A stretch of DNA of 63,831 bases, counting the filler, from Neoconidiobolus thromboides FSU 785 (taxonomy: Eukaryota; Fungi; Entomophthoromycota): the NCBI GenBank assembly GCA_025603075.1. It is 6 parts of 6 records of this genome, joined end to end, with 100 filler letters (N's around TTAATTAATTAA, not from the genome) between each part and the next. Parts side by side here need not be neighbours in the genome. Positions count along the whole stretch, not along the records: positions 19,604 to 37,535 come from MU626573.1; 5 more parts are not named here. One strand, 5' to 3'. Positions 19,504-37,635 of the stretch are shown here, piece after piece (the first letter of the stretch is position 1; each line of letters opens with the position of its first letter). The translations under genes were made by a program, and so were the position numbers. Under the pieces are notes generated by a model. The model worked only from the letters and a program-made list of their open reading frames with translations, did not search any database and was not told the DNA's origin.

Positions 19504-19603
19504 NNNNNNNNNNNNNNNNNNNNNNNNNNNNNNNNNNNNNNNNNNNNTTAATTAATTAANNNNNNNNNNNNNNNNNNNNNNNNNNNNNNNNNNNNNNNNN
19601 NNN
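19504..19603. other. Assembly gap spacer (also 37536-37635, 38805-38904, 58563-58662, 62029-62128)
   Basis: 100-nt N runs with a central TTAATTAATTAA (stop codons in all six frames). Confidence 0.95.
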
Positions 19604-21006
19604 AGTGACTTGTTTTTACCATCAATACCAAATTTAAACCAGAATAAAGACATTATTAAACCTGTACCTAAAAAACCAGCAATACATACTGCCGATCCAA
19701 CAACATTCTTGGCCCCAGTAGGATCATATATACCAAGTAGAATATAAGGTGCTACAGCTGCAATTACTCGACCTGCAGCTACTGAAACACCAATACCAGT
19801 AGCACGTAGATGAGTTGGAAAAGCTTCTGTTATAGCTGGATATACTGTACCCATAACAGCAAAGTAAGAAAAGATATAATAACAATGAGCACCTTGAATA
19901 GCAGCTTTGACATTAGGAGAATAATAAGCTGGTATAATTACTAAAGAGGCAATAATAGCATTGGTATAAACAATTGGTAAAAGGAATTTTCTACCAATTT
20001 TATCAATCAAATAAGCAGCAATTAAATAAGAAGCAATAGAACAAATAGTTCCATATAAGTAAGTCAATGAAACATCACCATCTTTGATATTAGCATCATT
20101 AAATACACCTAAGGACATGAGATTGGATTCACCATAATCAGCAAATGCTTGAGAGAAGTTCATAACCATACCAAATGCACAACGGAATGGGTATTTGACA
20201 AATAAACTTTTAACAACAGCAAACCAAGACATTTTTTCATGTGGTTTATAAGCAATCTGATTCTCACATGGTGGAGTATCATATTTATTATTAGGTTGAC
20301 CAGCAGATGTTTCAATAAATATGACTACTTCTTCAGCTTCTTGATAACGAGATTGAGCTAATAACCAACGAGGAGATTCAGGAAGTTTATGTCTAACAAT
20401 TAAAACAAAAATAGCAGCTGATCCACCAACAGCAAATCCAATTCTCCAATTATATGCTCTATCAACATAAGTTAATATAGGATATTGAATAGCATTAGCA
20501 ACTAAAGCACCTACAGCCCAAAAGCTCATTACAATTGTATTCACTTTACCACGATGTTTTGATGGGATAAACTCAGAGATTGTAGAGTTCACAGCAGTAT
20601 ATTCAGCACCTACACCAACAGCAGTCAAAAAACGGAATACTAAAAAGAAAGGATAATGGAATGAAGCAGCAGTAATACAAGTCATTAAAGAATAAAATAA
20701 GATAGTAACAACAAAGGAAAGCTTTCTACCAAATCTATCACCAAAATAACCAAAACCTAAAGCACCAACTAAAGCACCCATCAACCATACAGTAGTAATA
20801 GCACCTGCTGCTTGTGCAGTGATATTGAAATAAACTTTTAGATTATTAAGCATAGAAGATACAATAGTAATCTCAAAAGCATCAAATGCCCAACCTACAC
20901 CAAGGATAACAGTCAATTTTGTATGCCATCTAGTCCAATTAAGATTATCTAGACGTTTGAATAAGTGGTTTGGATCAACTTCACTTTCAATATTTTTGTT
21001 TTCCAT
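19604..21006 (-). CDS. Major facilitator superfamily transporter (SV2/SVOP-NiaP/aromatic acid:H+ symporter-like); C-terminus lost in the gap
   Basis: About 12 TM helices; motif A GDRFGRK and the repeat DKIGRK; PESPRWL; N-terminal RLDNLNWTRWH...LGVGWAFDAFE; no introns. Confidence 0.9.
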
Positions 21007-21958
21007 TTATTTAAATTAAAGTTGGTCTCTAAATTCTCCAGTATAGGTCTTTATATACTGTGTAATAGCTCTTAGACCCTCAATTCCTAAGCCTTGCTTT
21101 TAATTCTAGCCTGTCTTATAAATTATTTCAAATGATGGCCAATGATTAAGATTATTATATACATTAAAATGCACGTTGCTTCTATGGCGAATCTGAGCTG
21201 CAATAAATTCTATAATTTTGTTTTAAATTGCTTAAAAAATCATCAATATTCAATTAAAAGTTAATTGAAATAAGGCTAAACTTGGTATTGATTTCGATTC
21301 TGGGTTAAGGTAAAATTTAATTTAGACACACTATTAATCAAACCTTAAAGTAAAGGATTGGTTTGTTAAATCTTATCTATATTTGGTTATGATAATTATT
21401 TCAATATTTGTCCAACATTTACATCTTTTTCCGATATATTTCTACTAAAATATGTAATAATGATGCTTAGAATTTATTACATGACAAAGATAACATAAGG
21501 TAACATAGTAATGAATATTAAGTATATAATAATATTAAAAAATGGAAGCGACTTCTCAGAAAACAAGTTGAATTTATAGAATAAATCAAAATCCGTAATA
21601 TTACTTTTAACTAATAAAAAGCAAAAAAGATAAGCAATTTAGAAAACTTTATTAGAATTTTTGATGATATTTTTCAATTTGGTCTTTATCATTATTATAA
21701 ATACTTTGAAAAAATCATATCCGAAGAGATGTGTGATACTTTAAAAAATACATGTACGAAAGTTGTCCTAAATTCACATCTTTTACATAATTCAAATCTT
21801 TTTCCGATATGTTTCCATTAAAAGGTGAGTGCTAGCAGTTTGATTACGAAGAAAATATATTCAAAGTGGGTATAATTTGAATTTAAATTTAAACTTAAAT
21901 CATATACATCATTTAAATATAATAGATTTAATCATTTTGTTTGTAATTTCTTAAAATT

Positions 21959-22096
21959 ATCATTCAAACATAATATAATTTTATACTTGGTCTGTTTTAC
22001 ACTCACTGGCCATCATATTTTTCCTCAATTTTAGCTAATAAATATGGTAGTTAATGTGAAACAGACCAAGTACAAATTATATTATGTTCAAATGAT
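21959..22096. repeat. Imperfect inverted repeat (about 60-bp arms, about 20-nt loop)
   Basis: atcattcaaacataatataattttatacttggtctgttttacac pairs with gtgaaacagaccaagtacaaattatattatgttcaaatgat. Confidence 0.8.
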
Positions 22097-22935
22097 TATT
22101 CTATCCCATCTTATCTGCTTAACCTTCCTTCATCAAGAATATAAATGCATTAATTTAGTACTAATAAACAAAAATTCTTTCGTACACTATTTACATTTCT
22201 GTAATGCGTTTAATCATATCTACATTAAGCTTATATACACTAAAAAGTAAAAAATAATTTTATCATTTAGTATATGAATTTTAAATTCAAAGTGAAGGAA
22301 ATCTATATCAAAGTACTTACAATAGATTATGTATTTTCTTTTACTAATATTATTAGTTGATTAAAAACATAACCAGTCATATTAAGTGTTTAAAAAACAT
22401 TCACAGAGGCTCGATAATCGTTATAATTATAAAGTGAATTAAGAATAAAACAATCGATCATAATATAAGTTACGTTTCAATATAAACTAAGTTGAAATCA
22501 AGTATCACTCTTCTAATGGACAATAGCCACTTTATCAAAACAGCATAATAGTCAATAAACAAGAAATACATTAATGTGCAATAAAATAAACATTTATCCA
22601 AGTTTATTTAATTGAATTATTATATTGAATTTGGGCTAATTTGAATCCAAGGTTCAGTCTCTTTCTAATTTTTATTTATTGTAAAGTAGTAGGAAACTGA
22701 ACATAAGTTGTATGAAAGTGAAATGTATACTTCACTTATTGAAATATCTTAATGACTTTTTTTGGACTTTATTATTTAATTCATAAATATAATATTTTTA
22801 AAGTATATTAAAAATCCATAGCTTACATAATTAGATACCTATATCTCAATCAAAGGGGAATTATCTCTAATACCAATCAGTATCCTCTCTCAATCCAACT
22901 AGTACTTCCATATATTATAGGCATTATTAACATAT

Positions 22936-23033
22936 GGGGATGTATTTTTATGTTTAAGAATTTTACTAACAAATTTTCCACTTAAATAGCGCTTAAAAAA
23001 TGGAAAAAATAATGAAGTCAAAAAAACACTCCC
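22936..23033 (+). mobile_element. MITE family A copy
   Basis: Full length, 98 bp, ATAT flanks. Confidence 0.9.
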
Positions 23034-23140
23034 ATATTATCTCTTGACTTGATGCAAAGCAAAAATGAATCTATTATAAGATGAAAAAAAGGCTCCTCCT
23101 ACTTAAGATTTCAATGCACAGCTTTAAAAGTAACTATAGC

Positions 23141-23338
23141 AAATTCTAATTCATTTGAATCATCTTGATGGAATTTGAAGCTAGTCTTTTATATCATACT
23201 TTCATTTTATGTTATATAAGTCTTAATACTTGTAAATAAAATTCTAATTCATTTGAATCATCTTGATGGAATTTGAAGCTAGTCTTTTATATCATACTTT
23301 CATTTTATGTTATATAAGTCTTAATACTTGTAAATAAA
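23141..23338. repeat. Perfect tandem duplication, 98-bp period, 2 copies
   Basis: ttctaattcatttgaatc...tgtaaataaa starts at 23144 and again at 23242. Confidence 0.9.
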
Positions 23339-23737
23339 GTACAAAAAGATAGTATTATCTATGTGATTCATTTTAAAATTTCAAGAAAAGCAGCACAACG
23401 ATTGTAATCAAAATATGTCAATAATTCTTTATTTGTGGGTAAAAGATCAAGAGTGATGTATGTTACGCTTACTTGAAATTTTTATTGATTAGTGTAATAA
23501 AGGAGGGATTGATTGTGATCTAACCATACCATTGCAACCACGACCTTTGATGTAATGGATATCTTTCAAGTTTAAGAGTACCATATAAAGGAAGGCTTAC
23601 GGTTGCAGTACTTTTATATCATATCTTAACTATTAGAATGTTTTTGGCTTTTAAAAGGTTTATAATTATTATTTAATTACTTCTATATTCAGTACAGATT
23701 TCAATCAAAGTTAATTTCAGTTTTATAATAAAGATAT

Positions 23738-23833
23738 GGTAATGTATTTTTTCGTTTAAAAAATTTGCTAATAATTTTTCCACTCAAATAGCGCTTAAAA
23801 ATGGAAAAAGTAATGAAGTCAAAAAACATCCCC
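23738..23833 (+). mobile_element. MITE family A copy
   Basis: GGTAATGT...ACATCCCC with ATAT flanks. Confidence 0.85.
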
Positions 23834-23977
23834 ATATTTTTGATGAATAATTTTAGTTTTGAATGACTAGTAAATTTTAAACCTAAACAATAAAAACAGT
23901 AAAGTAGAGAATAATAGTTAAACTTAATCGTTAACAGTTTAATAATTCATTCAAGTTCTAGAAGTAAAAATATAATT

Positions 23978-24556
23978 TTAATAATAAGTTCTAGTCCTAG
24001 TTCTAGTTCTACTAGTGTAATAAGGAGTAGTAGAAGTCTTAGTGGTGGTACTAGTTCCGGTAGTAGAGGTTTCAGTAGAAGTTTCAGTAGAAGTTCCGGT
24101 AGTAGAGGTTTCAGTTGATGTACCAGTAGTAGAGGTTTCAGTTGATGTACCAGTAGTAGAGGTTTCAGTTGATGTACCAGTAGTAGAGGTTTCGGTAGAA
24201 GTTCCAGTAGAAGTTTTGGTAGAAGTACTAGTTTCAGTACTAGTTTCAGTACTAGTTTCAGTACTAGTTTTAGTAGTTCTAGTTCTAGTTTTAGAGCAAT
24301 AAGGAGGTTTAATAGTAACTACTTTAGTATCAGTAGAAGTAACTATTTTAGTAGAGGTAACCGTTTTAGGACGACATGGGGTAGGGCAATAGGATGGTTT
24401 TTTGGTTATAGTGGTTGTTAATGTTTTGGTTACCCTTGAAGTAGAGGTAACAGTTTTTGGTCTACAGGGGTTGTATCCACCATAATATTCAACTGGCGAA
24501 GCTGCATCAGAGACAGAGAGTAAAAGAGCAATTGGAATGAGGATTTGAAATTTCAT
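23978..24556 (-). CDS. Secreted Thr/Ser-rich protein with two Cys-bracketed modules and TSTETST repeats
   Basis: Signal peptide MKFQILIPIALLLSVSDA; YYGGYNPC; two CRPKTVTST...YC modules; ~30-nt tandem repeats at about 24060-24210; ends RTRTRTRTYY. Confidence 0.85.
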   Translation of the reverse strand: MKFQILIPIALLLSVSDAASPVEYYGGYNPCRPKTVTSTSRVTKTLTTTITKKPSYCPTPCRPKTVTSTKIVTSTDTKVVTIKPPYCSKTRTRTTKTSTETSTETSTETSTSTKTSTGTSTETSTTGTSTETSTTGTSTETSTTGTSTETSTTGTSTETSTETSTTGTSTTTKTSTTPYYTSRTRTRTRTYY

Positions 24557-24594
24557 GGTTATTTTTGATGATTTTTATTGCTTTCATAAGATCC

Positions 24595-25128
24595 CTTTTT
24601 ATAGTTGTTGTTATGGTGTAGTTTTGAATAAAGACATGGGCTTTTGCCGGTGGTATATTTTTATATATTCAAAATTAATAAGAGTAAATTAAATCAACTT
24701 TATGATTTCCAATGATATTTACTATGTTAATAAACTGGCACACTTCAATTCTGATTCATTCTTTTGATGTATCTAATGTCTCTATATTTCAAGTCTTTTC
24801 TAATTTTAGCTTATTTAATTAAGCATCATAAATAGCTTGCATTAGCTTTAATTAAAATATTAAAACTAGAAATCTAGCTTTTCGACAATTGCTAAATTTA
24901 TTTCAGCTATGAATTTTTCACTTAAGCATGATTTGGCTTTTTAAAGATTTAAAAATATGATTTCGAGACCTACTTTATATTGATTTAATAATAAGTGCAG
25001 CTTTATTTCTAATATTAATATTTTTTATTATAAATATTAAAAAGAACTTTTTAAAAAACAAGGGCTTAGTTGTATATGACCTTATACAACTTAGCTTCTA
25101 TTATAGCTATCTAAAATTTGTATATAAA
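24595..25128. promoter_or_regulatory. Putative bidirectional promoter with opposed TATA boxes (cassette 1)
   Basis: CTATAAAAAG on the minus strand at 24595-24604 and TATATAAA on the plus strand at 25121-25128; both recur at matching positions in cassette 2. Confidence 0.55.
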
Positions 25129-25210
25129 CTCAACTATATTATTATGAATTTATTACAAAATAACAAGTTATTAGCACAAATTCGATTTGACCCAAAAAAT
25201 ATAAAACAAA

Positions 25211-25375
25211 ATGAAATTCTTATCCATTATTGTATTACTCGCTACCTCTGCTCTTGCTCAAGATTATGGCTATGGCAAACGCTGTAAAGATGTCACCAAA
25301 GTGGTTACCAGTACTACAGTTACCTATGTGACCAAAACAGTACAAGGTACTTGTCCTACAGTCACTTATTATTAA
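25211..25375 (+). CDS. 54-aa secreted Cys/Thr/Tyr peptide (not in ORF track)
   Basis: MKFLSIIVLLATSALA-QDYGYGKRCKDVTKVVTSTTVTYVTKTVQGTCPTVTYY*; AAAATG start, upstream TATA box and a conserved paralog at 27038. Confidence 0.85.
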   Translation: MKFLSIIVLLATSALAQDYGYGKRCKDVTKVVTSTTVTYVTKTVQGTCPTVTYY

Positions 25376-26101
25376 AGTTTATTAATAAATTAATGAGATT
25401 GGATTTATTTAAGCTAAAGCTTTTATGAGATTTTTTTTGATACAATATCAGTTATTTATAAATTTTGAATGTTAAAAGCAGTTGAAGCCAATACTTGATA
25501 CTAATATCACTTTAAATAATGAAGTTGAAAAAACCAAAAGTGTCACTTTTTTTGAAATGAGTTTAAGTTTTATTATTTATGGAATTAAAGCTAAAAGTGG
25601 GACTAATTATCATTTGCAAACTCAAATTATTCCAATTTTTTGACCCAAAGTATACTAAGAGTTTTTAAACCTGATGTCAAGTATGTGGACCCCTTGGGCA
25701 GTTTAATTCAATAGCTTTTAACACATTGCTTGGGAAATAATTTCATTTTAAAAAAATCATTTGATAGACTAGTTTATTATTCTAATATCATTGTCTTTTA
25801 GTTACTTACAAGAGCATTTCGCTTTTCTAAAATAAATTTTAACTCTTAGTTGTTTATATTGTTTAGTATAAATGTAATCAAAATTATATAATATTTGATT
25901 AACAAAAGTTAAGCTATTTATGTATCAGTAGTTTAATTATAAAGGGTATAATGGCTTTGTTAATTTTTATAGTTTATAAACTTAGAAATACTCTCAAACA
26001 ATCTTAAATTTTGAACTACAATGATAAAAATAAAAAGCAAAATAATCTTTAGTGTCAAACTATTGATAATATGCTTATGTTTTAGAAGTAAATGTATGAC
26101 T

Positions 26102-26428
26102 TTAATAACAAATTTTAGTTTTAGTAGTAGAAGTATAATAAGGCCTAGTTCTGGTAGTCGAAGAATAGGGAGTGGTAGTATCAGTAGTGATATGAGGGGT
26201 AGATGTGCTGTTAGAAGTATAGTAAGGCGTAGTCCTGGTACTAGAATGATAAGTGGTAGGACAATCAGTTGGTCTACTGACTACGGTAATTGTTGAAGTT
26301 TCAGTTATCTTTGAGGTGGAGGTAACGGTTCTTGGTTTACAAGGATTGTATCCCCCATAATAGTCTGAAGAAGCTGCATTAAAGCAAGAGATCGAAGCCA
26401 TAATTGGAATGAGTACTTCAAATTCCAT
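26102..26428 (-). CDS. Secreted Thr-rich protein, paralog of 23978..24556, with one Cys module
   Basis: Signal-like N-terminus, DYYGGYNPCKPRTVTSTS...DCPTTY, TTPYY repeats, ends KTKICY. Confidence 0.8.
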   Translation of the reverse strand: MEFEVLIPIMASISCFNAASSDYYGGYNPCKPRTVTSTSKITETSTITVVSRPTDCPTTYHSSTRTTPYYTSNSTSTPHITTDTTTPYSSTTRTRPYYTSTTKTKICY

Positions 26429-26467
26429 TGCTATTTTTGGATGATTGTTGTTATCACCATAAGGCTC

Positions 26468-26970
26468 CTTTTTATAGGCTGATGTCGTAATGTAACTCCA
26501 TTTTAAACAGAGGCTTTTAACAGAGATTTATTTTTAAATAATCATAATTAACGTAAATATATTAAACTTATGATTTACAATTAGATTTATTACGTTGATA
26601 AAATGACATTTCTTTATTTTAGTTAAATCTTTGATGTTTCACTTTATATTTTATTAATTTAATGTTTTGAATCTTTTCTAATTTAAACTTTCTAAAGCTC
26701 CATTATGGATTGCATTATCTTTTAAAAGAAACCCAACTCATCGAAAATTGCTAAATTTAGTCTAATGTAATGAAAATTTTGTTTAAAGTAAATATAGTTT
26801 CGAAGGTTACTAATTTAATAAGATTTTATAGTCATTTGAATGCTTATTTTCAACATCTCTACTTTAAATAAAATTTTACAAAAATAACTCTATATAAAAG
26901 CAGAGGCTTATATGATCCTCATCTAATACGCTGTCCTCTCTATCATAGATACTCAAAGCATGTATATAAA
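26468..26970. promoter_or_regulatory. Putative bidirectional promoter (cassette 2)
   Basis: CTATAAAAAG on the minus strand at ~26468-26477 and TATATAAA on the plus strand at 26963-26970; collinear conserved blocks with 24557..25210. Confidence 0.55.
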
Positions 26971-27037
26971 CTCGACTTATCTTTTGAAAATAAATAAGTT
27001 AGTGTCAAACTCGATTTAAGTCAAACAGAAAAAAAAA

Positions 27038-27202
27038 ATGAAATTCCTATATGCTATTGTATTACTTGCTACCTTCACCCTTGCTCAAGATTATGGCTAT
27101 GGCAAACGCTGTAAAGATGTCACCAAAGTGGTTACCAGTACTACAGCTACCTATGTGACCAAAACAGTACAAGGTACTTGTCCTACAGTCACTTATTATT
27201 AA
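27038..27202 (+). CDS. 54-aa secreted Cys/Thr/Tyr peptide, paralog of 25211..25375 (not in ORF track)
   Basis: MKFLYAIVLLATFTLA-QDYGYGKRCKDVTKVVTSTTATYVTKTVQGTCPTVTYY*. Confidence 0.85.
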   Translation: MKFLYAIVLLATFTLAQDYGYGKRCKDVTKVVTSTTATYVTKTVQGTCPTVTYY

Positions 27203-27747
27203 AGTTTATTAATAAATTAATGAAAGTAGATTTTCACAACTTTTTTTAAAGGTTCTTTTTCAACTTTTTACTTATTCATCTTATGCGAATTTTTTTCAGC
27301 ACTTGGCTGATGATTTTTCTAAATTTTGCACCTCATAATAAAGGGACAAAAGAATAGTGCAAAAAAACGCTTCCCGATAGATTTTCTAAATTTCCAACCT
27401 AAATCAAACTGTCACATTTTATGTAACCAAGGCTTTAATTCATCTATACAAAAAGTGTTACCAATTTAATAGATTAATTTAATGTTCCAACAATAAAAAA
27501 GCGCCAAAATATCTGCGGGTTATAATTTGTCCGTGAATTTTAAGAAAATAAAATTGTGATATCTCCGTTTTGGAAAAAATTAAAGATTTAAACTCCTTTT
27601 TACTCTTTGAATTTAAAAGCAACTCCTTTTTAATTTTTAAAATCATTCATCAATCATTCTTAATTGATAGAATATAGCTCGAATTTAACTTTGTAAAAAT
27701 TTAGTAGACTGTTTTAAAAATTTAATAAATAATTATATTAAAAAACG

Positions 27748-28256
27748 ATGGGTAAAGAAGAGATGGCAAAAGTAGAAGAGAGTAGTTTATCTTTATTAAC
27801 GGGATATAGCCAACAAGAAGAGGTAGTTTGTCTATAAACTGTCATTAGTATAATACTAATTTTTTTAAAAGATCATTTGGGAAGGTACAACGTGGCCACT
27901 ATTATGTTGCTCACCGTTGACAATGAATAGTATTCAATGGAAAATAACGAATAAAAAAATTGAAAAGATACATGGGTTTATGGGTTCTAAAAATGATGTT
28001 ATAGATTTAAGAAGGGTGACTGATATTGCTTATTTTCGTTCTTGTACTCAAATGTGTTCGGGCAGAGGCTCTATTGTTATTCATTCTAGGTAAAAAAAAT
28101 TATATTTATTATTCTATTGTTTATTTACTTATTACTATCAGTACTTCAATGGAACCGGTAGTGGTTATATCCTCTTGGGGATTAAAAGAAGTTTATCGTA
28201 AACTTAAAGAAGCTTGGTTATCTTCAAACGCTAATCAATTTATTATGGCTACTTAA
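27748..28256 (+). CDS. Small protein resembling the bacterial PH domain (bPH_2/DUF304) family; 3 exons
   Basis: Spliced product MGKEE...QQEE/IIWEGTTWPLLCC...WKITNKKIEKIHGFMGSKNDVIDLRRVTDIAYFRSCTQMCSGRGSIVIHS/STSMEPVVVISSWG.... The EExxW, I-x-L-x-R-V-x-D and Q-x-x-x-G-x-G-x-I pattern fits bPH_2 as recalled. Confidence 0.6.
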
Positions 28257-29242
28257 TTTCTTCCTTATTTAAATCGATTTTAATTTTTATGTAAATATAT
28301 AGTGTTGTTATCTATCATGTCCTTTTATAACTATTCTAGCTTTTAGTTCTATCTTTAATTTATTAACAGTAAGATACATTTAACCTTTTGTCACTTTTCC
28401 TTTAATTTTAATCTATTTTGTTTCAATTTCAAAAACAATGCTTATAGAAATAAGATATATCTATGATGGAAATTTAAATAGTTTCTTTTGATACTTAAAT
28501 TTAAGGTTTAGATTGCTTGGTTTGATACAATAAACATACCTCCCATAAATAAAAACTAAATCTGTACTTTTTTGACACTCTTTTTTATTAGTACTAAAAT
28601 TGAATAATATCATTTATAGCAGCGTATCAGTTATATATATGTTAATATTTGACTTCAATTGTAACGACTCGGTCGATTTAGTGCTGCTCCCATAAAAAAC
28701 AGCTTATACTACTTTTTATGCAAGGATAGACAACAATATGACTTAAGATAGAATAAGTAAGTAAAGTGATATTTTCAGGAGGTTTCAATGATTTCAATGC
28801 CCAATATGAATCCTAAAATAAAATATTCAACAATAGAATCTATATTCATTTTGCTTAGAACTTTAGAATAAGCTGAGTTACTATTGAAAATTTATAAGAT
28901 GTCTTGAATTAATGGACAATTTAATTGTCATAGCTGTTATTAAAGTTAGTGTAACTAAGTAAACTTTAATTATAATGAGCTAATAAAAGTAATCAATAAA
29001 ATAAAAATAGCTATGAATAGTCTTCCGTAACTTAGTAGGTATCTTTTAATCCCTCATCCCTACCATTTAGTTCACTATTTAATTTTCCTTTTTCAATAAT
29101 GAAACGCTTGGAAGCTCTTCTCCTTTAAAGTTTTTTAAAATGCCAATAGCATAAAGCTAAATGATTGGAAGAAAATCAAACTATAATTTATCGAAAAATA
29201 TGGACTTTCAATTTTAATTTTTCTATTTCTAAAAAACTTTTA

Positions 29243-29817
29243 ATGTGTAAACATATTCTTAATGTACAAGTAAACTTCATAGCATTCTAGTAATTTTAGC
29301 CACTAACAAAGTTGATTTATTTATATATTACCCTTTTAACTCAAAAAAGGTATCCATCAGAGCACCATGTTGTAAGCAATGGTTTGATTGCTCAGATTGT
29401 CATAAAGAATTAACAGATCATAAATTAAAAAGACAACAAGAGTTAGTATTTGGTTGTAAAAAATGTAAAAAAGTTTTTAGAAAAAATACAAAGTAAGTTA
29501 TTAATATTTATAGTAGCTTAATATTTAATGATATTGATTTAAAAAGTGACTTTGATCAAGCAGATGAATATTGTCCCCATTGTGATAACCATTATGTTTT
29601 ACCAGCTCAAACAAGAAATGATCTTAGTGATTTGGAGTTACCAACATTAGATACCGACATTAGAGTGGATAATAGGTAATAGGAAATAGTATAATATAGT
29701 GTAATAAGAAGAGTAGGAAACTAACTCTTTTTTAGTATGTTATTAGATGTAAGAATGAAACAGCCTAGTCTTGAAGAGCAATTAAAAGATCTTGATTATT
29801 CGGATTTGTTGGGCTAA
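29243..29817 (+). CDS. CHY-type zinc finger protein (4 exons; not in ORF track)
   Basis: MCKHILNVQ/VSIRAPCCKQWFDCSDCH...FGCKKCKKVFRK/...DEYCPHCDNHYV, spliced through GT-AG introns. Confidence 0.88.
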
Positions 29818-29843
29818 TATAAGATAGATCAATAAAATTTTAT

Positions 29844-30830
29844 TTAGTTTGTTAAGTTTTGGAATTTCTTAGGTAATATCAATTTTTTCCATTTAATTGA
29901 AGCGATGTTGCTATTATTGTTAATACTTGTACTTATCTCATCAGTAACAGAATAAGGGGGTAAAGGTTCATCAAAATAAAAGTTATTAAGTAAATAATTA
30001 ATGGAGTACGTTGTTAGTTTATCACAATTAGATAAATTTAGTCTGTTCAAGTAGCGTAATTGGTTCAAGATTAAGATTAAATTATTATCATCTAATTTAA
30101 TACAATTAGATAAATCTACTTGCTTTAAATTTTTAAATAATAATAAAAATTGAATTAAATGAGTTGTGTTTATATTAAGCCCAGGTATTATTAATCGCTT
30201 TAAATTATTGAAGTTATTCGATATTCGTTTACTATCTCCGTCTTTGCATTTTGACCCACTGATGTTGCTATTTATACTCTTAACTAAATAAGTGATGGTA
30301 CTATTTGAAATAAATTCATTGATTGTTTCATCTGAGAAGATTAAACTTGATAAATTGTTTAACTTTAGAAATATCAAATGCAACCAATTTTTATTACTAT
30401 TATAAACAGAATCCATGAAATTGAATTGAATCTTTGATAAATCTAATACTTTAATCCAATCCAACTGTTTCACTATAATATTAGTTGATAAACTTGATAA
30501 AAACTGAATAAAACAAGTTAAGCTTGGTTTATACGGATTTTGATCAAACTTGGGTTGATAGTATAATAATCGTTGATTAATGTTGTAATGTTGATGATTT
30601 AAATAACTTAACTTTATTAGACTTTGTTGTACTTTAAAATTTGTTAACAAGATTCGATTTTGGCTTATCATTTTGTAATAGATTGTCAATATATTGTTAT
30701 TGTCATTATTCATATATTCTATGATATCTAACAAACTATCGTCTTCAACAACGTCATATAAGTTTGTTTGATTAAAATTAGCTTCAATTGACTTTGTATT
30801 GAATTGACTCAATTTCATTATCGTTAACAA
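29844..30830 (-). CDS. RNI-like leucine-rich repeat protein (F-box/LRR-like)
   Basis: LKQVDLSNCIKLDD and LNRLNLSNCDKLTT cysteine-containing LRRs; no clear F-box. Confidence 0.6.
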   Translation of the reverse strand: MLTIMKLSQFNTKSIEANFNQTNLYDVVEDDSLLDIIEYMNNDNNNILTIYYKMISQNRILLTNFKVQQSLIKLSYLNHQHYNINQRLLYYQPKFDQNPYKPSLTCFIQFLSSLSTNIIVKQLDWIKVLDLSKIQFNFMDSVYNSNKNWLHLIFLKLNNLSSLIFSDETINEFISNSTITYLVKSINSNISGSKCKDGDSKRISNNFNNLKRLIIPGLNINTTHLIQFLLLFKNLKQVDLSNCIKLDDNNLILILNQLRYLNRLNLSNCDKLTTYSINYLLNNFYFDEPLPPYSVTDEISTSINNNSNIASIKWKKLILPKKFQNLTN

Positions 30831-31077
30831 AAAAGTGATATTTGTATCCTAATATTTATATATACTTTTTTTAAATACTTAGTCAACTTATCCAGAAAAA
30901 TAACTACATAATTTCAGCGCTTTTTTTAGAATGTGATTTCTTATTTAGAAATAATTGATATAAGTAAACAAAATTGAGTAACAATTTAAACTATCATTCA
31001 ATAAAACTAAAAGTAATTCAATAGTATTTTGATGGTAATATTTTTATAGATTTTTAAAATTATTACAAACAACATAA

Positions 31078-31175
31078 GGGGATGCACCTTTTTATTCAAA
31101 AATTTTACTAATAATCTTTCCACTCAAACAGCGCTTAAAAAATGGAAAAGTGTTGAAATCAAAAAAAACATTCTC
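31078..31175 (+). mobile_element. MITE family A copy
   Basis: 98 bp, flanked by the non-palindromic direct repeat ATAA (31074-77 and 31176-79). Confidence 0.85.
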
Positions 31176-32199
31176 ATAAATAACATCTTTTAGATATTAC
31201 TCAAGTTAAAAGTAAGGAAAATTCCTTAAATTTTAAAACGGAAAGTACCTTAAATAACTGTTCTAGTTTATCCTCACCGATCCGGTCGCCTAAACGGGTG
31301 GGGTATCATGGAGTGTCATCTTCTACCTTTCTAGAATTAAAAAATTGAGGCATAAATATTGAGACAGCCTCCAACTACCAAGATATAGGTTACACTGATA
31401 TCAGTTTTGACTAATTTTAACAATAATGAAATGAAGTCCTTTTTATACTTTTTGAATGGGAACTTTTAATTCAGTTTTAAAGATTGAAGCAATTCAAATT
31501 TAAATTTCTTTATTTGGTAGTTTCCAAATTTTTAATTCAATTTGAGTTGAATATATTGAAACAAAAACTATTAATTTAACTTGAGTTGTTTACTAAGAAA
31601 CAATGATCTACCTGACGGTGAGATATTAACTAATAAGGCATGCGATAGTTTAAAATCTAACTACAATATCACTTTGTAGTATCAGAGAAGATATACTCTG
31701 GGGTCTGAGTTCAGAAGCTTAAACAAGTGAGTGGGCCTTTTAGGAATAAACTAGTAAGTTTGTAAATTTCAATTAAATATAAATGTCTTTGAAGATAGCG
31801 CCAAAGCTACACTTATGCTATATATGATGTGTAATTGGAGACCATTTCAAAAATTAACTTTCAGAATTTTAATACTAAAAAGGCAGTAGATGCCCCCTAT
31901 AATACCTTATTCGTTTAGATGGCTGAGCTGATAGAAGTGAACTTGAACAGCTGTTCAAGATTCTCTATAATTTTTGGGTTTTTAAAAGGTCTTCCTTATT
32001 TTTACCCAAGTATTGTTCTTGTAATAGTATTTATATTGCTTCTAATAGTTTTAAAACTCTAAAAAACTAATTAGTAGCTTATAAATTTATAAATTCCTAA
32101 TAGAGCCTAAACTAATAAATACTTTATTTAACAAATAGCATCAAAAACAATAAAAGTTAATAGCCATGGTGCTAAGGCTTCTCTATTATTCCAACTTTT

Positions 32200-32400
32200 A
32201 ACAAAGCGGATTTTTGTAAAATCAAACTTATTTATCTAGGCTATATCCCGCATAATATAGTTTGCTGAGACCAGGGATAATGGGGAGCCTATCTTTCATA
32301 GTAACTTTGTGTTTACTCAATATATAGCCTATTGTACTGGTAGCAAAAAACTAACAAAGATAGTAATGTGGAAAGTATTTAAAATACTCATTGAAAATAT
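32200..32400 (-). mobile_element. Possible highly decayed reverse-transcriptase relic (Penelope-like motif)
   Basis: Across frameshifts reads FCYQYNRLYIE*T..KVTM..GSPLSLVSANYIM, similar to the YxQxxGxxMGSPLSPxxANxxM RT motif; no YxDD found. Confidence 0.25.
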
Positions 32401-33021
32401 CAGTGTTAGCAAAAAAAATTATACAGACCAATACCAATATAAATAGAACAAATGCTTAAGGGCAGATTGACTTAATTATTGAATAGATAAAGAGCCTGTG
32501 GTTTAATAATTTTTTAATAGATAACAAAATGGACATTGTAGCTCTATGTTCAATTTATATAAATTAATTTTTTTGTGGCAGGAAATAAGTTTGCTAAAGG
32601 TTGAGCTAAAAACAGGTATTTATTGATTAGCTTTTTGAACTTGAGTTAAGCCGTAAATATTGAGCGTAGTGGTACTCTGATAAGTTTAGGTAAGATAAGA
32701 TGATGACCTTATCAGATCATTTTGCTTTATTACTTGCTATTAAAAACTTCAACTTTAAAATGGGAATATCATAAAAAATTCTATATTTCTATCAGAAATA
32801 AAAATGAGAAATAGAAAGACTTAATCATAATAAAAAAGTCATCAATAATATAACTCAAAAGAGAGGGAAATACTTGATAATAAATCCCTGAATTATTCGA
32901 TATTGGATTAATTTTATTTTGATTTTTTTAGATAGCTAAAAAGAATTGCATTAATTCTAACTTCTGGGTTCATCCCATACAAACTATAGATATAATAACA
33001 ACAAATAATAAAAATGACAGC

Positions 33022-34749
33022 TCACTTGTTCAAGCTATTAACTGTATTAAAGGTAGTATTATTTGTAGTAGAATTAGCATTAGCTACAACTGTCTCTTCA
33101 TTTGATTTCACTTTCGTTGATCCATTATCAATTGAAGCAACAGTATTATTACAATGAAATATAAACGGGTTATTAAGTTGATTTAATTCAAAATTCAAAT
33201 TATTAGTTGAAGAATTGGTATAATGGGAATTTAATTCCCAAATACCATATTCATCCCCATTTTTACCATTAGGCTGAGATAGCTTTAATGAATTTAAAGA
33301 AGGAGAAAGAAAAGCTGAATTATTTTTAGCATTAATTCGTCTTCTTTTGCTATAATAATATAAACCACAAATAATAAATAATAATATTATACCACATGAA
33401 ATTCCTACGATTTGATCAGTTTCTGGACCGTTATATGACATTGGTATCTTACCATTTTTGTTGTTTTCGTACTGTATGTATTCCTTGGATGTATACAATT
33501 GAGTGAAGTTTTCATCCTCTCTTTTTACTGCCGGCCCTATTGTATTACTCATCTTAACTATTTTCTTTACTAAATCAAGTGTATTCAGGTCGATTGCAAT
33601 AATATCATATTTATTATCATTAGTATTAATATCCCCATAAAAAAATACCAGCTTATCATTAATTAATTCGCTTGAATGCCATGCTCTACCAATGTTAAAT
33701 ATCTCGTTATCGAAGTCAACTATGTTAATTTTAGTCCATTGCCAGTTACTCAAGCTCAATAATTGAATATCATTATATAAAAGATTGTAGTTATTTATTT
33801 TATCTGTACCACCGTAAACCAACATACAGTTTAAAGTAGGTAGATAAGTAGCCGAATGTCCCATCCTTACTTTATCATCATAATCCCTTGTTTCTATCCT
33901 TTTGTGCATTCTCTTAGTTATATCATATAGATAAACATATTTTAAATTTGCTATTGTTGATTCATTATAGTAACCTTGATTCCTTAAACCAAATCCAAGG
34001 TCAGGATCTGTATTAAAAATCTTTTCATAAGACACACCACCAGTTATAACCATATTAGTCGAATTAATCTTAGTAGTTGTATGAAAAGCATTGGGTGGCA
34101 TATGGGTACTCACATGATAGCTATTATCGTAAATACGGTTATTAAGTATATTAAAAGTTGTAGCTCTATTGGTTAATAGCGAAAAATTAGTATTTAAATC
34201 TAATAAACAACCCCCGTATGTAAATAACATATTACCCATTTTTGTCACCGATATACCTCTAAAATTCTTTTGATAATATGGAAATAAATCAAACTTACTA
34301 ACCCACTTTTCTTTATCTAAATTGATTGTAAGCAATTCCGATTGTATTTTTAACTTATCGTTAGCCTCATTACTGGAAGGAAATTTATCAACCATTGCTA
34401 CAGTATTTAAATTATTATCAAAGTTGAAAAAATAAAGATCATAAATATTGTTTATGACATTTCTCCTTAAATTTACATTCAAATAAATTTGGTTCAAGTC
34501 AACGGTTGAAGTTAGATTAACTAAAAAATGACTATTTTTCACGCTTACTTCTTTTTCATTTCCTTCTCCTTTATTATCAATCTCTTTTTTTTTGACTGTA
34601 TTATATATTAATAACATTTGATCATGCAATATTGTACTACATTTTATAAATTCTTTATTTCCTTTTTTAACCTTTTCAAACTCACTTTTTATTACATCTA
34701 TTGATAGTAATAATAAATTTATTGTCAATAAATACGACCTATATATCAT
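33022..34749 (-). CDS. Kelch-repeat type I membrane protein
   Basis: Signal peptide; LFTYGG, MVITGG, MLVYGG and GRAWHS Kelch motifs; TM IVGISCGIILLFIICGLYYY followed by KRRR; Asn/Ser-rich tail. Confidence 0.82.
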   Translation of the reverse strand: MIYRSYLLTINLLLLSIDVIKSEFEKVKKGNKEFIKCSTILHDQMLLIYNTVKKKEIDNKGEGNEKEVSVKNSHFLVNLTSTVDLNQIYLNVNLRRNVINNIYDLYFFNFDNNLNTVAMVDKFPSSNEANDKLKIQSELLTINLDKEKWVSKFDLFPYYQKNFRGISVTKMGNMLFTYGGCLLDLNTNFSLLTNRATTFNILNNRIYDNSYHVSTHMPPNAFHTTTKINSTNMVITGGVSYEKIFNTDPDLGFGLRNQGYYNESTIANLKYVYLYDITKRMHKRIETRDYDDKVRMGHSATYLPTLNCMLVYGGTDKINNYNLLYNDIQLLSLSNWQWTKINIVDFDNEIFNIGRAWHSSELINDKLVFFYGDINTNDNKYDIIAIDLNTLDLVKKIVKMSNTIGPAVKREDENFTQLYTSKEYIQYENNKNGKIPMSYNGPETDQIVGISCGIILLFIICGLYYYSKRRRINAKNNSAFLSPSLNSLKLSQPNGKNGDEYGIWELNSHYTNSSTNNLNFELNQLNNPFIFHCNNTVASIDNGSTKVKSNEETVVANANSTTNNTTFNTVNSLNK

Positions 34750-36066
34750 ATTCTATTATTGTCCTTTATTCATAATATCTTTATAACTATAAACATAATT
34801 TGATTGTATTCTTCTTTGCTATATTCCCATTTAAGAATGTTACAAAATTGTAATCTATTTTTTATCCTTATCTTGATTGGACAGTATTTATTATAACAAA
34901 AGTTAAAAATTAAAAAGAAAAAAATACTAATAGAATAGTAAATATAGTCAAGACTGAGAATATTTTTTATTATTGTTCAAAATAAAACAAAAATTTGATT
35001 ATTTTTTTAAAAATGTTTTACGTCTAAATTACTATGTTTTTATCTACATATCATTGCTGGTAGCTCTGAAATTGTGAAGCGTATATCTAATCCGGTGAAC
35101 TGTTCTCTATTAGTATCTAAATCTTCTAAAGGATTTTGAATAGTAGTCATTCTTATCGTACTATTAATACAAGTTTCTTTGTTTATTATAAACAGAACTT
35201 TAAATCCTAACCCAATAGATATAATGAAAATAACTTATTCATTCATTGAGCTTTAGTAAAATTTTCAAAAGATGAATCTTTAATAGTTGAATTTTAAAAC
35301 CATTTTAATCAATAAAATTATAGCTAACTCATTGGCTAGCCCCAATCACTATTAAATTTACACATTATGATAAAACACATATCAGCATAATCTAAAATTT
35401 ACATTGCTAGTGTTATAAACTCTGGGTTTTCATCAAGTAATTATTTTTTGGATCAGGTGTAAAAATTTACTGAAGTAGTATTTTTACATCTGATCCCTAT
35501 TTTTTATACTCTTGAAGGAGTAAATTAGTTCTTAGGTGATTATTTTAGGAAGAACTTTTTTGACTATAATCGTCAGAGTCCATTTACTTGGATGTTTGCA
35601 ATTATATTTATAAAATGTACTTTATAAAAAAAAGCAAATAAACAAAAAAATATAATCTATACTACATAAACACGCTTTAAATTATTATTAATACTATAAA
35701 TCTATAGATTTCAAAACTATAGAGAACTAGAAGAATCATGTCTTTGAGTTGAATTTCAAAAATTTAAATCAGGGATTTGAGCACTAATTTGGATCTTCCA
35801 ATAACTAATGTTCAATTTTCTAAAATTATTATATACAATTCTATAAGTTAATTCAAATCAGCATTTGGCCATGATAATTGGAAATATCTCATTGTAAATA
35901 GAACTATTATTTTAGTTACAATCATCAGAGTTATCCTTTAAGTTCTTATTTAATTTAATCGATATCAGGAGTGAATATTTACGGTCTATTTAAATAGAGA
36001 CTAAAACAAAGGTTATAGTCAACGTAAATAAGTATACGTTGCAATTGAAGAATTAAGATAAGTATA

Positions 36067-37535
36067 ATGTATAAGATAAACATATTTATGATATTGCTTT
36101 TGTTATTATCAACAAGTGTAACAAGCAATGAATTTGAGAAAATGAAGAAAGTAAATAAAGATTTTATAAAATCCAGTACGATATTATATGATCAAATATT
36201 ATTAGTCTACAATACTGTGAAAAGGAAAGAAATTAATAGTAAAGAAGAAGTAAATGAGAATGAAGTAAGATTAAATAATAGCCACTTTTTAGTCAACTTA
36301 ACTTCAACCATCAACTTGAACCAGATTTATTCAAAAGCAAGCTTAAAGAAGAATGTGATAGTGAATATAAAGGATTTACATTTTTTTGTACATGAAAATA
36401 ATTTAAATGCTGTAGCAACACTAGATAAGTTTCACTCAAACAACAAATTCATGCCTATAAACCATTGGTATTTAGGACTATTTACAATTAGCTTGGATAA
36501 GGAATCATGGAATATTAAAAATAATGCATTTGGCTATTACGCAAATACATATAGTGGTAAATCAATATCAAAAGTAGGTGATATGCTGTACATTTATGGT
36601 GGTTGGAGCTTAGACTTAGATACTAGTATTTCTAGATTAAGTAACAATTTTACTGTTTTTGATTTGACCAACAACAATACTTTTCGTTATGGTGTTGAAG
36701 TTGATTCTAACATGCCTCCTAATGCATTTCATACAGCTACTATGATAAATTCTACTACTATGGTCATACTTGGTGGTGTGCCTTATGAAAAATTAAATGA
36801 GATAAATCCTGGAAGCGAATATAATCCAAACAATGCAAGCTATTCTAAGGAACTGACAGTATCGAAATTAAAGTATATATATATATACAATACAGCCGCA
36901 GAAAGATATATGAAAGTGAAAACAAAGGATTATGATGATAGAGTAAGAATGGGACACTCTGCTACTTATTTATCTGATATGAATTGTATATTAGTTTATG
37001 GTGGTACAGATAAAGTAAATAATTACACTATTTTATATAATGATATTCAACTATTAAATTTAACTGATTGGAAATGGACAAAAATTATCATAAAGGATTT
37101 CAATGATGAGGTATTTAATGTTGGTAGAGCATGGCACTCAAATGAATTAATCAATAATAAAGTTGTATTCTTCTATGGAGACATCAACTACTACAATTAT
37201 AACTATAACTATGATATTATTGTAATTGATTTAGAATCACTCAATTTGGAAAAGAAAACAATTAAGTTGAGTGATACAATTGGACCAGCAATAAAAAGAG
37301 AGAATGAGGATTTTAGTCAATTATACACATCAAATGAATACTTAAAATATAACCTTGACACCTCCAGATACAATCTATATAGCTCTTTCAGTGGATCTGA
37401 GATTGCTGGAATCGTATTTGGATTAGCTTCCTTTTTTATTATATCAGCTATTTTATTGAATTATTCAAGAAATAAATATAAAAGATGGAAATGGTTTAGG
37501 AAATATAGTTCAATCGAATTAACTCTACGTCCTAC
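36067..37535 (+). CDS. Kelch-repeat type I membrane protein, divergent paralog of 33022..34749; C-terminus lost in the gap
   Basis: Shares MPPNAFHT, VRMGHSAT, YGGTDK, LYNDIQLL, GRAWHS and TIGPAxKRE with the paralog; TM IAGIVFGLASFFIISAILL. Confidence 0.82.
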
Positions 37536-37635
37536 NNNNNNNNNNNNNNNNNNNNNNNNNNNNNNNNNNNNNNNNNNNNTTAATTAATTAANNNNNNNNN
37601 NNNNNNNNNNNNNNNNNNNNNNNNNNNNNNNNNNN

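Follow-up and report, generated by a model that had tools for sequence, protein, structure and literature searches.

Positions 23978-27202 of a window of Neoconidiobolus thromboides FSU 785 DNA (the whole 63,831-nucleotide (nt) stretch, along which all positions are counted) contain two head-to-head pairs of small genes, each pair consisting of a Thr-rich gene on the minus strand (L1, L2) and a gene for a 54-amino-acid (aa) product on the plus strand (S1, S2). These genes probably belong to a lineage-restricted orphan family in which secreted, mucin-like surface or matrix proteins (the L proteins) occur with short S peptides; at this locus the pair was duplicated, and gene conversion appears to have acted on the S genes. 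The analysed piece, 19604-37535, comes from record MU626573.1 of this member of the Entomophthorales and is AT-rich eukaryotic DNA with a G plus C (GC) content of 22-36%. The listing of open reading frames (ORFs) in the piece yields four intron-less ORFs that form the two L(-)/S(+) pairs, with gaps from L start to S start of 654 bp in pair 1 and 609 bp in pair 2. The initial annotation had described a unit made of a Thr-rich gene (-), about 610-650 bp and a 54-aa gene (+) that occurs twice, and all four ORFs lie where it had placed them. The genes, their internal parts and the regions between them are as follows.

23978-24556, minus strand: L1, 192 aa, with a putative signal peptide, a YYGGY patch, two Cys-bracket modules, a Thr/Ser/Glu tandem-repeat stalk and a PYYTS...TYY tail
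24386-24466, minus strand: L1 module a, C-x25-C followed by PT (six-frame regular-expression scan)
24296-24376, minus strand: L1 module b, C-x25-C followed by SK (six-frame regular-expression scan)
24062-24294, minus strand: mucin-like tandem repeats of L1 with 27-nt and 12-nt periods, TSTETSTTG-type units (Tandem Repeats Finder)
24557-25210, no strand: divergent intergenic region 1, 654 bp, 22.9% GC
25211-25375, plus strand: S1, 54 aa, with a putative signal peptide, QDYGYGKR (candidate Kex2 site), C-x22-C followed by PT, and a VTYY end; 37.6% GC
26102-26428, minus strand: L2, 108 aa, with a weak putative signal peptide, YYGGY, one C-x25-C followed by PT, and a PYYTS-type Tyr/Thr-rich tail ending in ICY
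26429-27037, no strand: divergent intergenic region 2, 609 bp
27038-27202, plus strand: S2, 54 aa, 91% identical to S1

The four products share a common layout. Each has a hydrophobic N-terminal stretch (best 10-residue Kyte-Doolittle mean 2.2-2.8), a YGYG or YYGGY segment just ahead of the first Cys and a C-terminus of YY or CY. A six-frame scan of the whole piece for Thr-rich C-x(18-30)-C patterns finds exactly five modules, all of them located within L1, S1, L2 and S2. The bracket is spaced C-x22-C in the S proteins and C-x25-C in the L proteins, L1 carries two of them, and PT follows four of the five modules, with SK after L1 module b. The features that the initial annotation had read from the products, namely signal-peptide-like N-termini, YG(G)Y segments, C-x(22-25)-C modules mostly ending in CPT and YY or CY ends, are therefore all recovered. 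Judged by their N-terminal sequences, all four products look secreted.

Composition separates the two kinds of protein by degree. Mature L1, which includes about six copies of the 27-nt repeat, is 41% Thr and 15% Ser, the corresponding values in mature L2 are 32% and 15%, and mature S is 26% Thr, 18% Val and 13% Tyr. The isoelectric point (pI) is basic in all four products, and Thr, Val and Ile together make up 44-64% of the bracket fill. By their Thr/Ser-rich composition, and in L1 by the tandem repeats, the L proteins are mucin-like; L1 combines a putative signal peptide with a Ser/Thr-rich tandem-repeat region, which is the combination used to recognise mucin-like wall proteins and adhesins. 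The mature proteins contain two (S), four (L1) and three (L2) Cys residues, so that one Cys of L2 is unpaired. On the strand opposite the L1 repeat array lies an 86-aa ORF (24042-24302, plus strand; VVEVSVEV...), a by-product of the codon periodicity of the repeat and no gene candidate.

The two pairs correspond to a larger repeated unit, which blastn delimits as follows.

24367-25406, no strand: duplicated unit, copy 1 (L head, intergenic region and S gene)
26242-27233, no strand: duplicated unit, copy 2

In a single collinear alignment of 1064 columns, these intervals are 70% identical (E 1e-117), and there is weak similarity between the 3' ends of the L genes as well. On the strength of this alignment, the repeated pair is one segmental tandem duplication, of which the aligned part spans about 1.04 kb. 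Identity between the units differs strongly from one part to another: it is 38-72% per 50-column window in the intergenic regions (55-70% in most windows, with the lowest values at alignment gaps), 64-82% across the L heads and the sequence at the L starts, and 99/100 in the mature-peptide part of the S genes. Since the second pair is a copy that comes from a single duplication, the recurrence of the pairing is not independent evidence of functional coupling, and the proposal that the partners have been fixed as a co-regulated pair loses the second observation on which it leaned. A tblastn search of the piece with all family members finds no third, degenerate unit.

The near-identity of the mature S parts is confined to a short tract, for which an ungapped alignment gives the following limits.

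25253-25396, plus strand: putative gene-conversion tract, copy 1, which spans the mature S peptide and ends 21 nt after the stop codon
27080-27223, plus strand: putative gene-conversion tract, copy 2

The two copies are identical at 143 of 144 nt, and both boundaries are abrupt. Their sole difference is non-synonymous (Val/Ala), and by Nei-Gojobori counts the mature S part has no synonymous differences, compared with 5 synonymous and 5 non-synonymous differences over the 17 codons of the signal-peptide part just upstream. Given a proportion of synonymous differences (pS) of 0.40-0.46 elsewhere in the unit, 27 synonymous sites would all remain unchanged with a probability of about 1e-6 to 7e-8. 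Thr and Val codon use within the tract is mixed, and codon bias therefore does not explain the identity. Purifying selection was also considered as its cause and is ruled out by the zero synonymous differences, the identity past the stop codon and the mixed Thr and Val codons. The simplest reading is that recent gene conversion homogenised the mature-S tract. If so, the locus presents a clean small case of concerted evolution, with a conversion tract that is limited to the mature-peptide portion of a gene of 54 codons, inside a duplication that is otherwise old.

All four ORFs look like real genes. Their GC content is 37.3-38.2% (37.3% in L1 and 37.9% in L2), compared with 22.9-24.1% in the DNA between them. 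The L1 head is 51% identical to L2 (E 1e-17), and for the mature L heads the synonymous divergence (dS) is 0.70 and the non-synonymous divergence (dN) 0.235, which gives a dN/dS of about 0.33; for L1 module a versus module b, dS is 1.76 and dN is 0.35. By these substitution counts the L heads are under purifying selection, with the protein kept while silent sites neared saturation. The start context is conserved between the aligned units, and both intergenic regions contain short conserved blocks, among them TATA-like elements that precede the L start by about 40 nt and the S start by about 80 nt. These blocks, which may function as promoters, were located by a repeat scan and by alignment with unit 2, and in region 1 they occupy the following positions.

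24562-24604, no strand: conserved TATA-like intergenic block
25097-25135, no strand: conserved TATA-like intergenic block, with GTATATAAACTC
24868-24902, no strand: central conserved intergenic block

Among public gene models, L2 is an exact match to the annotated GenBank protein P0001; the protein collection has no entry identical to the S1 or L1 product.

Database searches place the family in N. thromboides and find it nowhere else in the data searched. A Pfam scan of L1, S1, L2 and S2 gives no family at E up to 0.1. A word-indexed search with S1 returns three proteins, all from N. thromboides: P0002, which is the public model of S2, and the paralogues P0003 and P0004, which both lie on one 39-kb contig. 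Equivalent searches with L2 and with L1 residues 1-95 return nothing beyond L2 itself. A profile built from S and the L heads and run against 1.84 billion representatives gives six matches at E up to 0.001, four of which are N. thromboides proteins. This search adds one family member, P0005, an L1-like, two-module protein modelled at 84 aa and found on two contigs. The remaining two matches were discarded as artefacts of low complexity or repeats; P0006 is a bacterial cadherin-like protein of 2517 aa, and P0007 is an ORF derived from a repeat. A PDB profile search finds no relative, the best ESM Atlas scores for L2 and S1 (0.82-0.84) fall within the range reached by shuffled sequences, and scans of metagenome contigs with the S and L alignments produce pattern matches of which none was confirmed.

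The genome of N. thromboides thus contains at least four S-type genes (S1, S2, P0003, P0004) and at least four L-type genes (L1, L2 and two P0005 copies), and the paralogues on other contigs keep both Cys residues and the tail. Pfam, PDB, the ESM Atlas and the protein and metagenome collections hold no S- or L-type protein from another organism, although small eukaryotic ORFs are often missed in gene calling, so that a tblastn search of related genomes would weigh more than absence from protein collections. The initial annotation had not recognised the family, which agrees with these results; the search of 1.84 billion representatives gives no strong match to a characterised family, only N. 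thromboides paralogues and the two artefacts.

The paralogues also show how far the residues around the first Cys vary. KR stands directly ahead of this Cys in S1, S2 and P0004 (...AQDYGYGKR, then C), whereas the preceding residues are GDS in P0003, which has no KR, and NP in L1, L2 and P0005. Dibasic sites are limited to the single KR of S and a single KK in L1, which has no KR; L2 has none.

Whether S and L are homologous depends on the test applied. The design that they have in common (signal peptide, Tyr/Gly patch, bracket, CPT and Tyr end) is striking by eye. BLASTP gives E 0.002 for S1 versus L2, partly through the signal peptides, and E 0.17 for S1 versus L1, and Smith-Waterman comparison of the mature parts of S and L against 5000 shuffles gives p 0.004-0.04. 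Profile methods are less favourable: hhalign of the two small profiles reports a P of 0.017 and a probability of 2.7%, with an alignment limited to YG..C..VTST, and an L-head hidden Markov model (HMM) does not separate S1 from its shuffled versions (p 0.45) and gives p 0.02 for P0003. With the tests in disagreement, the odds of homology are near even. The suggestion in the initial annotation that the small and large partners are homologues thus draws support from the shuffle test and the S1-L2 BLASTP value, is not borne out by hhalign or by the L-head HMM against S1, and overall stays unproven.

The favoured reading of the locus combines these results into a history and a tentative mechanism. 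A single tandem duplication of a segment of about 1.85 kb would have produced a second copy of an ancestral divergent L(-)/S(+) pair, and the copies would then have drifted to about 60-70% identity, apart from the 144-nt mature-S tract that conversion appears to have homogenised recently. Both S and L would enter the secretory pathway, where, by analogy with general fungal cell biology, the signal peptide would be cleaved and a disulfide would form across each bracket. The L proteins would present one or two short Cys-bracketed Thr/Val/Lys heads, a presumably heavily O-mannosylated Ser/Thr stalk and a Tyr-rich tail, and their lack of a glycosylphosphatidylinositol (GPI) signal suggests surface, wall or mucilage glycoproteins that are soluble or are held non-covalently or by disulfides. 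In three of the four S paralogues, a Kex2-type protease would probably also cut after KR, removing the QDYGYGKR pro-piece and leaving a peptide of about 30 residues that is expected to be closed by one disulfide. Such products would most likely serve hyphae or conidia as surface material, adhesive or extracellular matrix. Co-assembly of S with L, amyloid character and dityrosine cross-linking are speculation.

Several observations weigh against this reading. No GPI-type signal is found in the products, whose C-terminal 15 residues are hydrophilic (mean Kyte-Doolittle values of -1.9 in L1, -1.0 in L2 and 0.0 in S), and they contain no known wall-linkage motif, so that a location in the wall is a guess. 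Kex2 trimming is not a constant of the family, because P0003 has no KR site. The comparison of S1 with S2 is uninformative about selection on the S protein, because conversion has erased the signal. The L2 signal peptide, MEFEVLIPIMASISCF, is the weakest of the four and looks degraded, with an acidic n-region (MEFE) and dN greater than dS over codons 1-19. Structure prediction is unhelpful as well: AlphaFold2 gives no confident fold for S1 or for L1 residues 1-95, with mean predicted local distance difference test (pLDDT) values of 45.6 for S1 (6-row alignment) and 48.3 for L1 residues 1-95 (3 rows), and the best L1 model, which places one long strand within each bracket, has a confidence too low for use. 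The disulfide-closed beta unit proposed in the initial annotation is therefore plausible by composition, given the bracket fill, and gains nothing from the AlphaFold models.

The public model of S2 also conflicts with the layout described here. In P0002 (64 aa), a 78-nt GT..AG intron (27174-27251) replaces the C-terminal TCPTVTYY, so that the second Cys is lost. This splice model is considered wrong because P0003, encoded on another contig, ends in ...QGTCPTIAPYY and so keeps the Cys-Pro-Thr...YY end, and because the putative second exon of P0002 has no counterpart downstream of S1, where similarity ends at 25396. The P0004 model leaves the family pattern after KVVT, and both public models look mis-spliced. 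Public models of such mini-genes, as the locus illustrates, are incomplete or mis-spliced.

Three other explanations were weighed against a family of secreted surface or matrix proteins. In one, which is possible but unlikely, the S products are stand-alone Kex2-matured signalling, antimicrobial or host-directed effector peptides, each a 30-residue single-disulfide loop, and L is unrelated, its adjacency reflecting duplication history. S1, S2 and P0004 do have the Kex2-processed pro-domain (K2PP) layout of signal peptide, short Tyr/Gly pro-region, KR and Cys (PMC8528282). S-type paralogues are moreover annotated on a contig with no annotated L-type protein, S-L homology is not demonstrable with hhalign or the L-head HMM, and conversion holds the two mature peptides near-identical. 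This explanation would, however, make a coincidence of the design common to S and L (YG patch, bracket, CPT and Tyr end), and P0003 lacks the KR. Mature S has a net charge of only +2, is Thr-rich and is not amphipathic, and in these respects it is unlike known beta-hairpin antimicrobial peptides. A further doubt, that one or more of the ORFs are non-functional, either duplicates in decay, L2 above all, or ORFs that low-complexity DNA contains by chance, can be raised from the acidic, fast-evolving signal peptide of L2, the opposite-strand 86-aa ORF on the L1 repeat DNA, the absence of the exact S1 and L1 products from the protein collection and the low AlphaFold and ESM recognition values. It is highly improbable in view of the purifying selection on the L heads and modules, the position of all four ORFs as GC islands, the conserved start context and TATA-like blocks, and the retention of both Cys residues and the tail in paralogues on other contigs.

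The model put forward in the initial annotation, in which homologous S and L proteins co-assemble into a beta-rich, amyloid-like or adhesive, Tyr-cross-linked wall or spore-surface material under a shared bidirectional promoter, is distinctly unlikely. The genes are divergent over 610-650 bp with conserved blocks in both units, the common design is accompanied by the weak similarity seen in the shuffle test, and the beta-branched fill resembles the Ile/Val/Thr-rich amyloid cores of yeast adhesins (PMC6023273). Other features that suit this model are the unpaired Cys of L2, the Tyr-rich ends of all four proteins and the presence of four S-type and four L-type genes known in the genome. Against these stand the origin of both pairs in one duplication event, the profile tests (hhalign and L-head HMM) that do not support homology, the AlphaFold values, which offer no structural support, and the fact that nothing links the Tyr residues to cross-linking. 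Dense O-mannosylation of Thr would also work against amyloid packing. A bolder version, which is very unlikely, envisages a new two-component extracellular material in which a Kex2-released, disulfide-closed Thr/Val beta-hairpin S docks on similar L heads by strand addition, with Cys and Tyr cross-links fixing the assembly. Such a material might coat conidia or hyphae, or make them adhere, in a hydrophobin-poor lineage, with conversion keeping the S dose uniform.

Comparison with known systems is consistent with surface or matrix proteins of a general fungal kind and identifies no homologue. Features that recur in fungal adhesins are a high Ser/Thr content, repeats, dibasic motifs, Cys-rich parts and Ile/Val/Thr-rich beta-aggregating stretches (Lipke, PMC6023273), and about 75% of known adhesins have a C-terminal GPI-anchor signal (PMC6023273). 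The products resemble mucin-like adhesins of the Als, Flo and Mad1 type in their signal peptide, high Thr/Ser content, L1 tandem repeats, Cys-containing head, dibasic motifs and Ile/Val/Thr-rich stretches. They differ from these adhesins in having no sequence similarity to them, no GPI signal and no folded ligand-binding domain, and in their size of only 54-192 aa, the head being a Cys bracket of 24-27 residues and not a domain. The a-agglutinin of Saccharomyces, Aga1p/Aga2p, is the known precedent of a two-part surface protein joined by disulfides, in which one subunit is small, secreted and Cys-containing and the other forms a stalk rich in Ser and Thr. Aga1 carries a GPI anchor, and its gene is unlinked to AGA2. 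S and L have no homology to Aga, and the sole hint of an S-L disulfide is the odd number of Cys residues in mature L2. Cys motifs of Aga1 are mentioned in PMC6023273.

For the S peptides, the closest functional precedent as short Kex2-released surface material comes from the repellents of Ustilago maydis, where the polyprotein Rep1 is cleaved by a Kex2-type protease into 11 peptides that form surface amyloid fibrils (PMC3133707). S differs from Rep1 in having at most one KR site and one peptide, and shows no sequence similarity to it. The Kex2 KR motif and the K2PP layout are described in PMC8528282; PMC8528282 and PMC6339444 cover the K2PP class and the KEX2-processed repeat proteins (KEPs). 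The K2PP class is recognised by a signal peptide that is followed, within the first half of the protein, by a short, disorder-prone pro-region with KR, RR or LxxR at its end. S1, S2 and P0004 agree with the K2PP class by sequence, in that a signal peptide is followed by a short Gly/Tyr pro-region ending in KR, although K2PP is a maturation class and not a homologous family, and P0003 and the L proteins lack the site. KEPs require several repeated cores between KR or RR sites, and with one KR in S, only KK in L1 and no site in L2 the products fall outside that group. Hydrophobins are also small secreted Cys-containing fungal surface proteins, but they have eight Cys in the pattern C-X-CC-X-C-X-C-X-CC-X-C and hydrophobic patches, whereas S and L are Thr-rich and polar and have 2-4 Cys. 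With two Cys in S, four in L1 and three in L2, and with no Pfam match at the threshold given above, none of the products qualifies as a hydrophobin.

Families of this kind are not exceptional. Zygomycete secretomes are dominated by narrowly distributed small secreted proteins (SSPs) that lack Pfam domains (PMC9391592). In a survey of 132 genomes, more than two thirds of the multi-species SSP orthogroups have no Pfam similarity, and related species share few SSP groups (PMC9391592). The family described here has no known relatives, yet species-restricted secreted proteins of this sort are common in fungi, and as it stands it is one more orphan secreted family. The adhesion molecules of Entomophthorales are essentially uncharacterised (PMC6023273). 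If the products are components of the surface or mucilage, few surface proteins of this order would have been defined at the molecular level before them.

The remainder of the piece contains several further repeats and genes. An MFS sugar-transporter gene (19552-21006, minus strand; Pfam Sugar_tr, E 1e-50) is truncated where the piece ends, and downstream of it the intergenic DNA contains an imperfect 152-nt palindrome (21952-22103; 77% self-reverse-complementary). Just upstream of the cassette, 23141-23338 consists of a 98-nt unit duplicated in tandem without mismatch (2.0 copies, 100% identity), an event that looks very recent. A dispersed repeat of about 110 nt is present in three copies (22923-23038, 23725-23838 and 31063-31178) with 77-84% identity; it carries a short ORF fragment on the minus strand (FFKRYLSGK...KNT.PY) and may be a mobile-element or mini-gene relic. 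A 328-aa leucine-rich-repeat-like ORF without a Pfam match lies at 29844-30830 on the minus strand. Two paralogous genes for type-I membrane proteins are also arranged head to head (33022-34749, minus strand, and 36067-37587, plus strand, the second cut by the edge of the piece), and each product combines a Kelch beta-propeller (Pfam PF24681, PF24981) with a signal peptide and a transmembrane segment. These two genes are 54% identical in protein and 71% identical in DNA, which is the same divergence as that of the L/S unit duplication, and the neighbourhood may therefore have had several duplications at about the same time.

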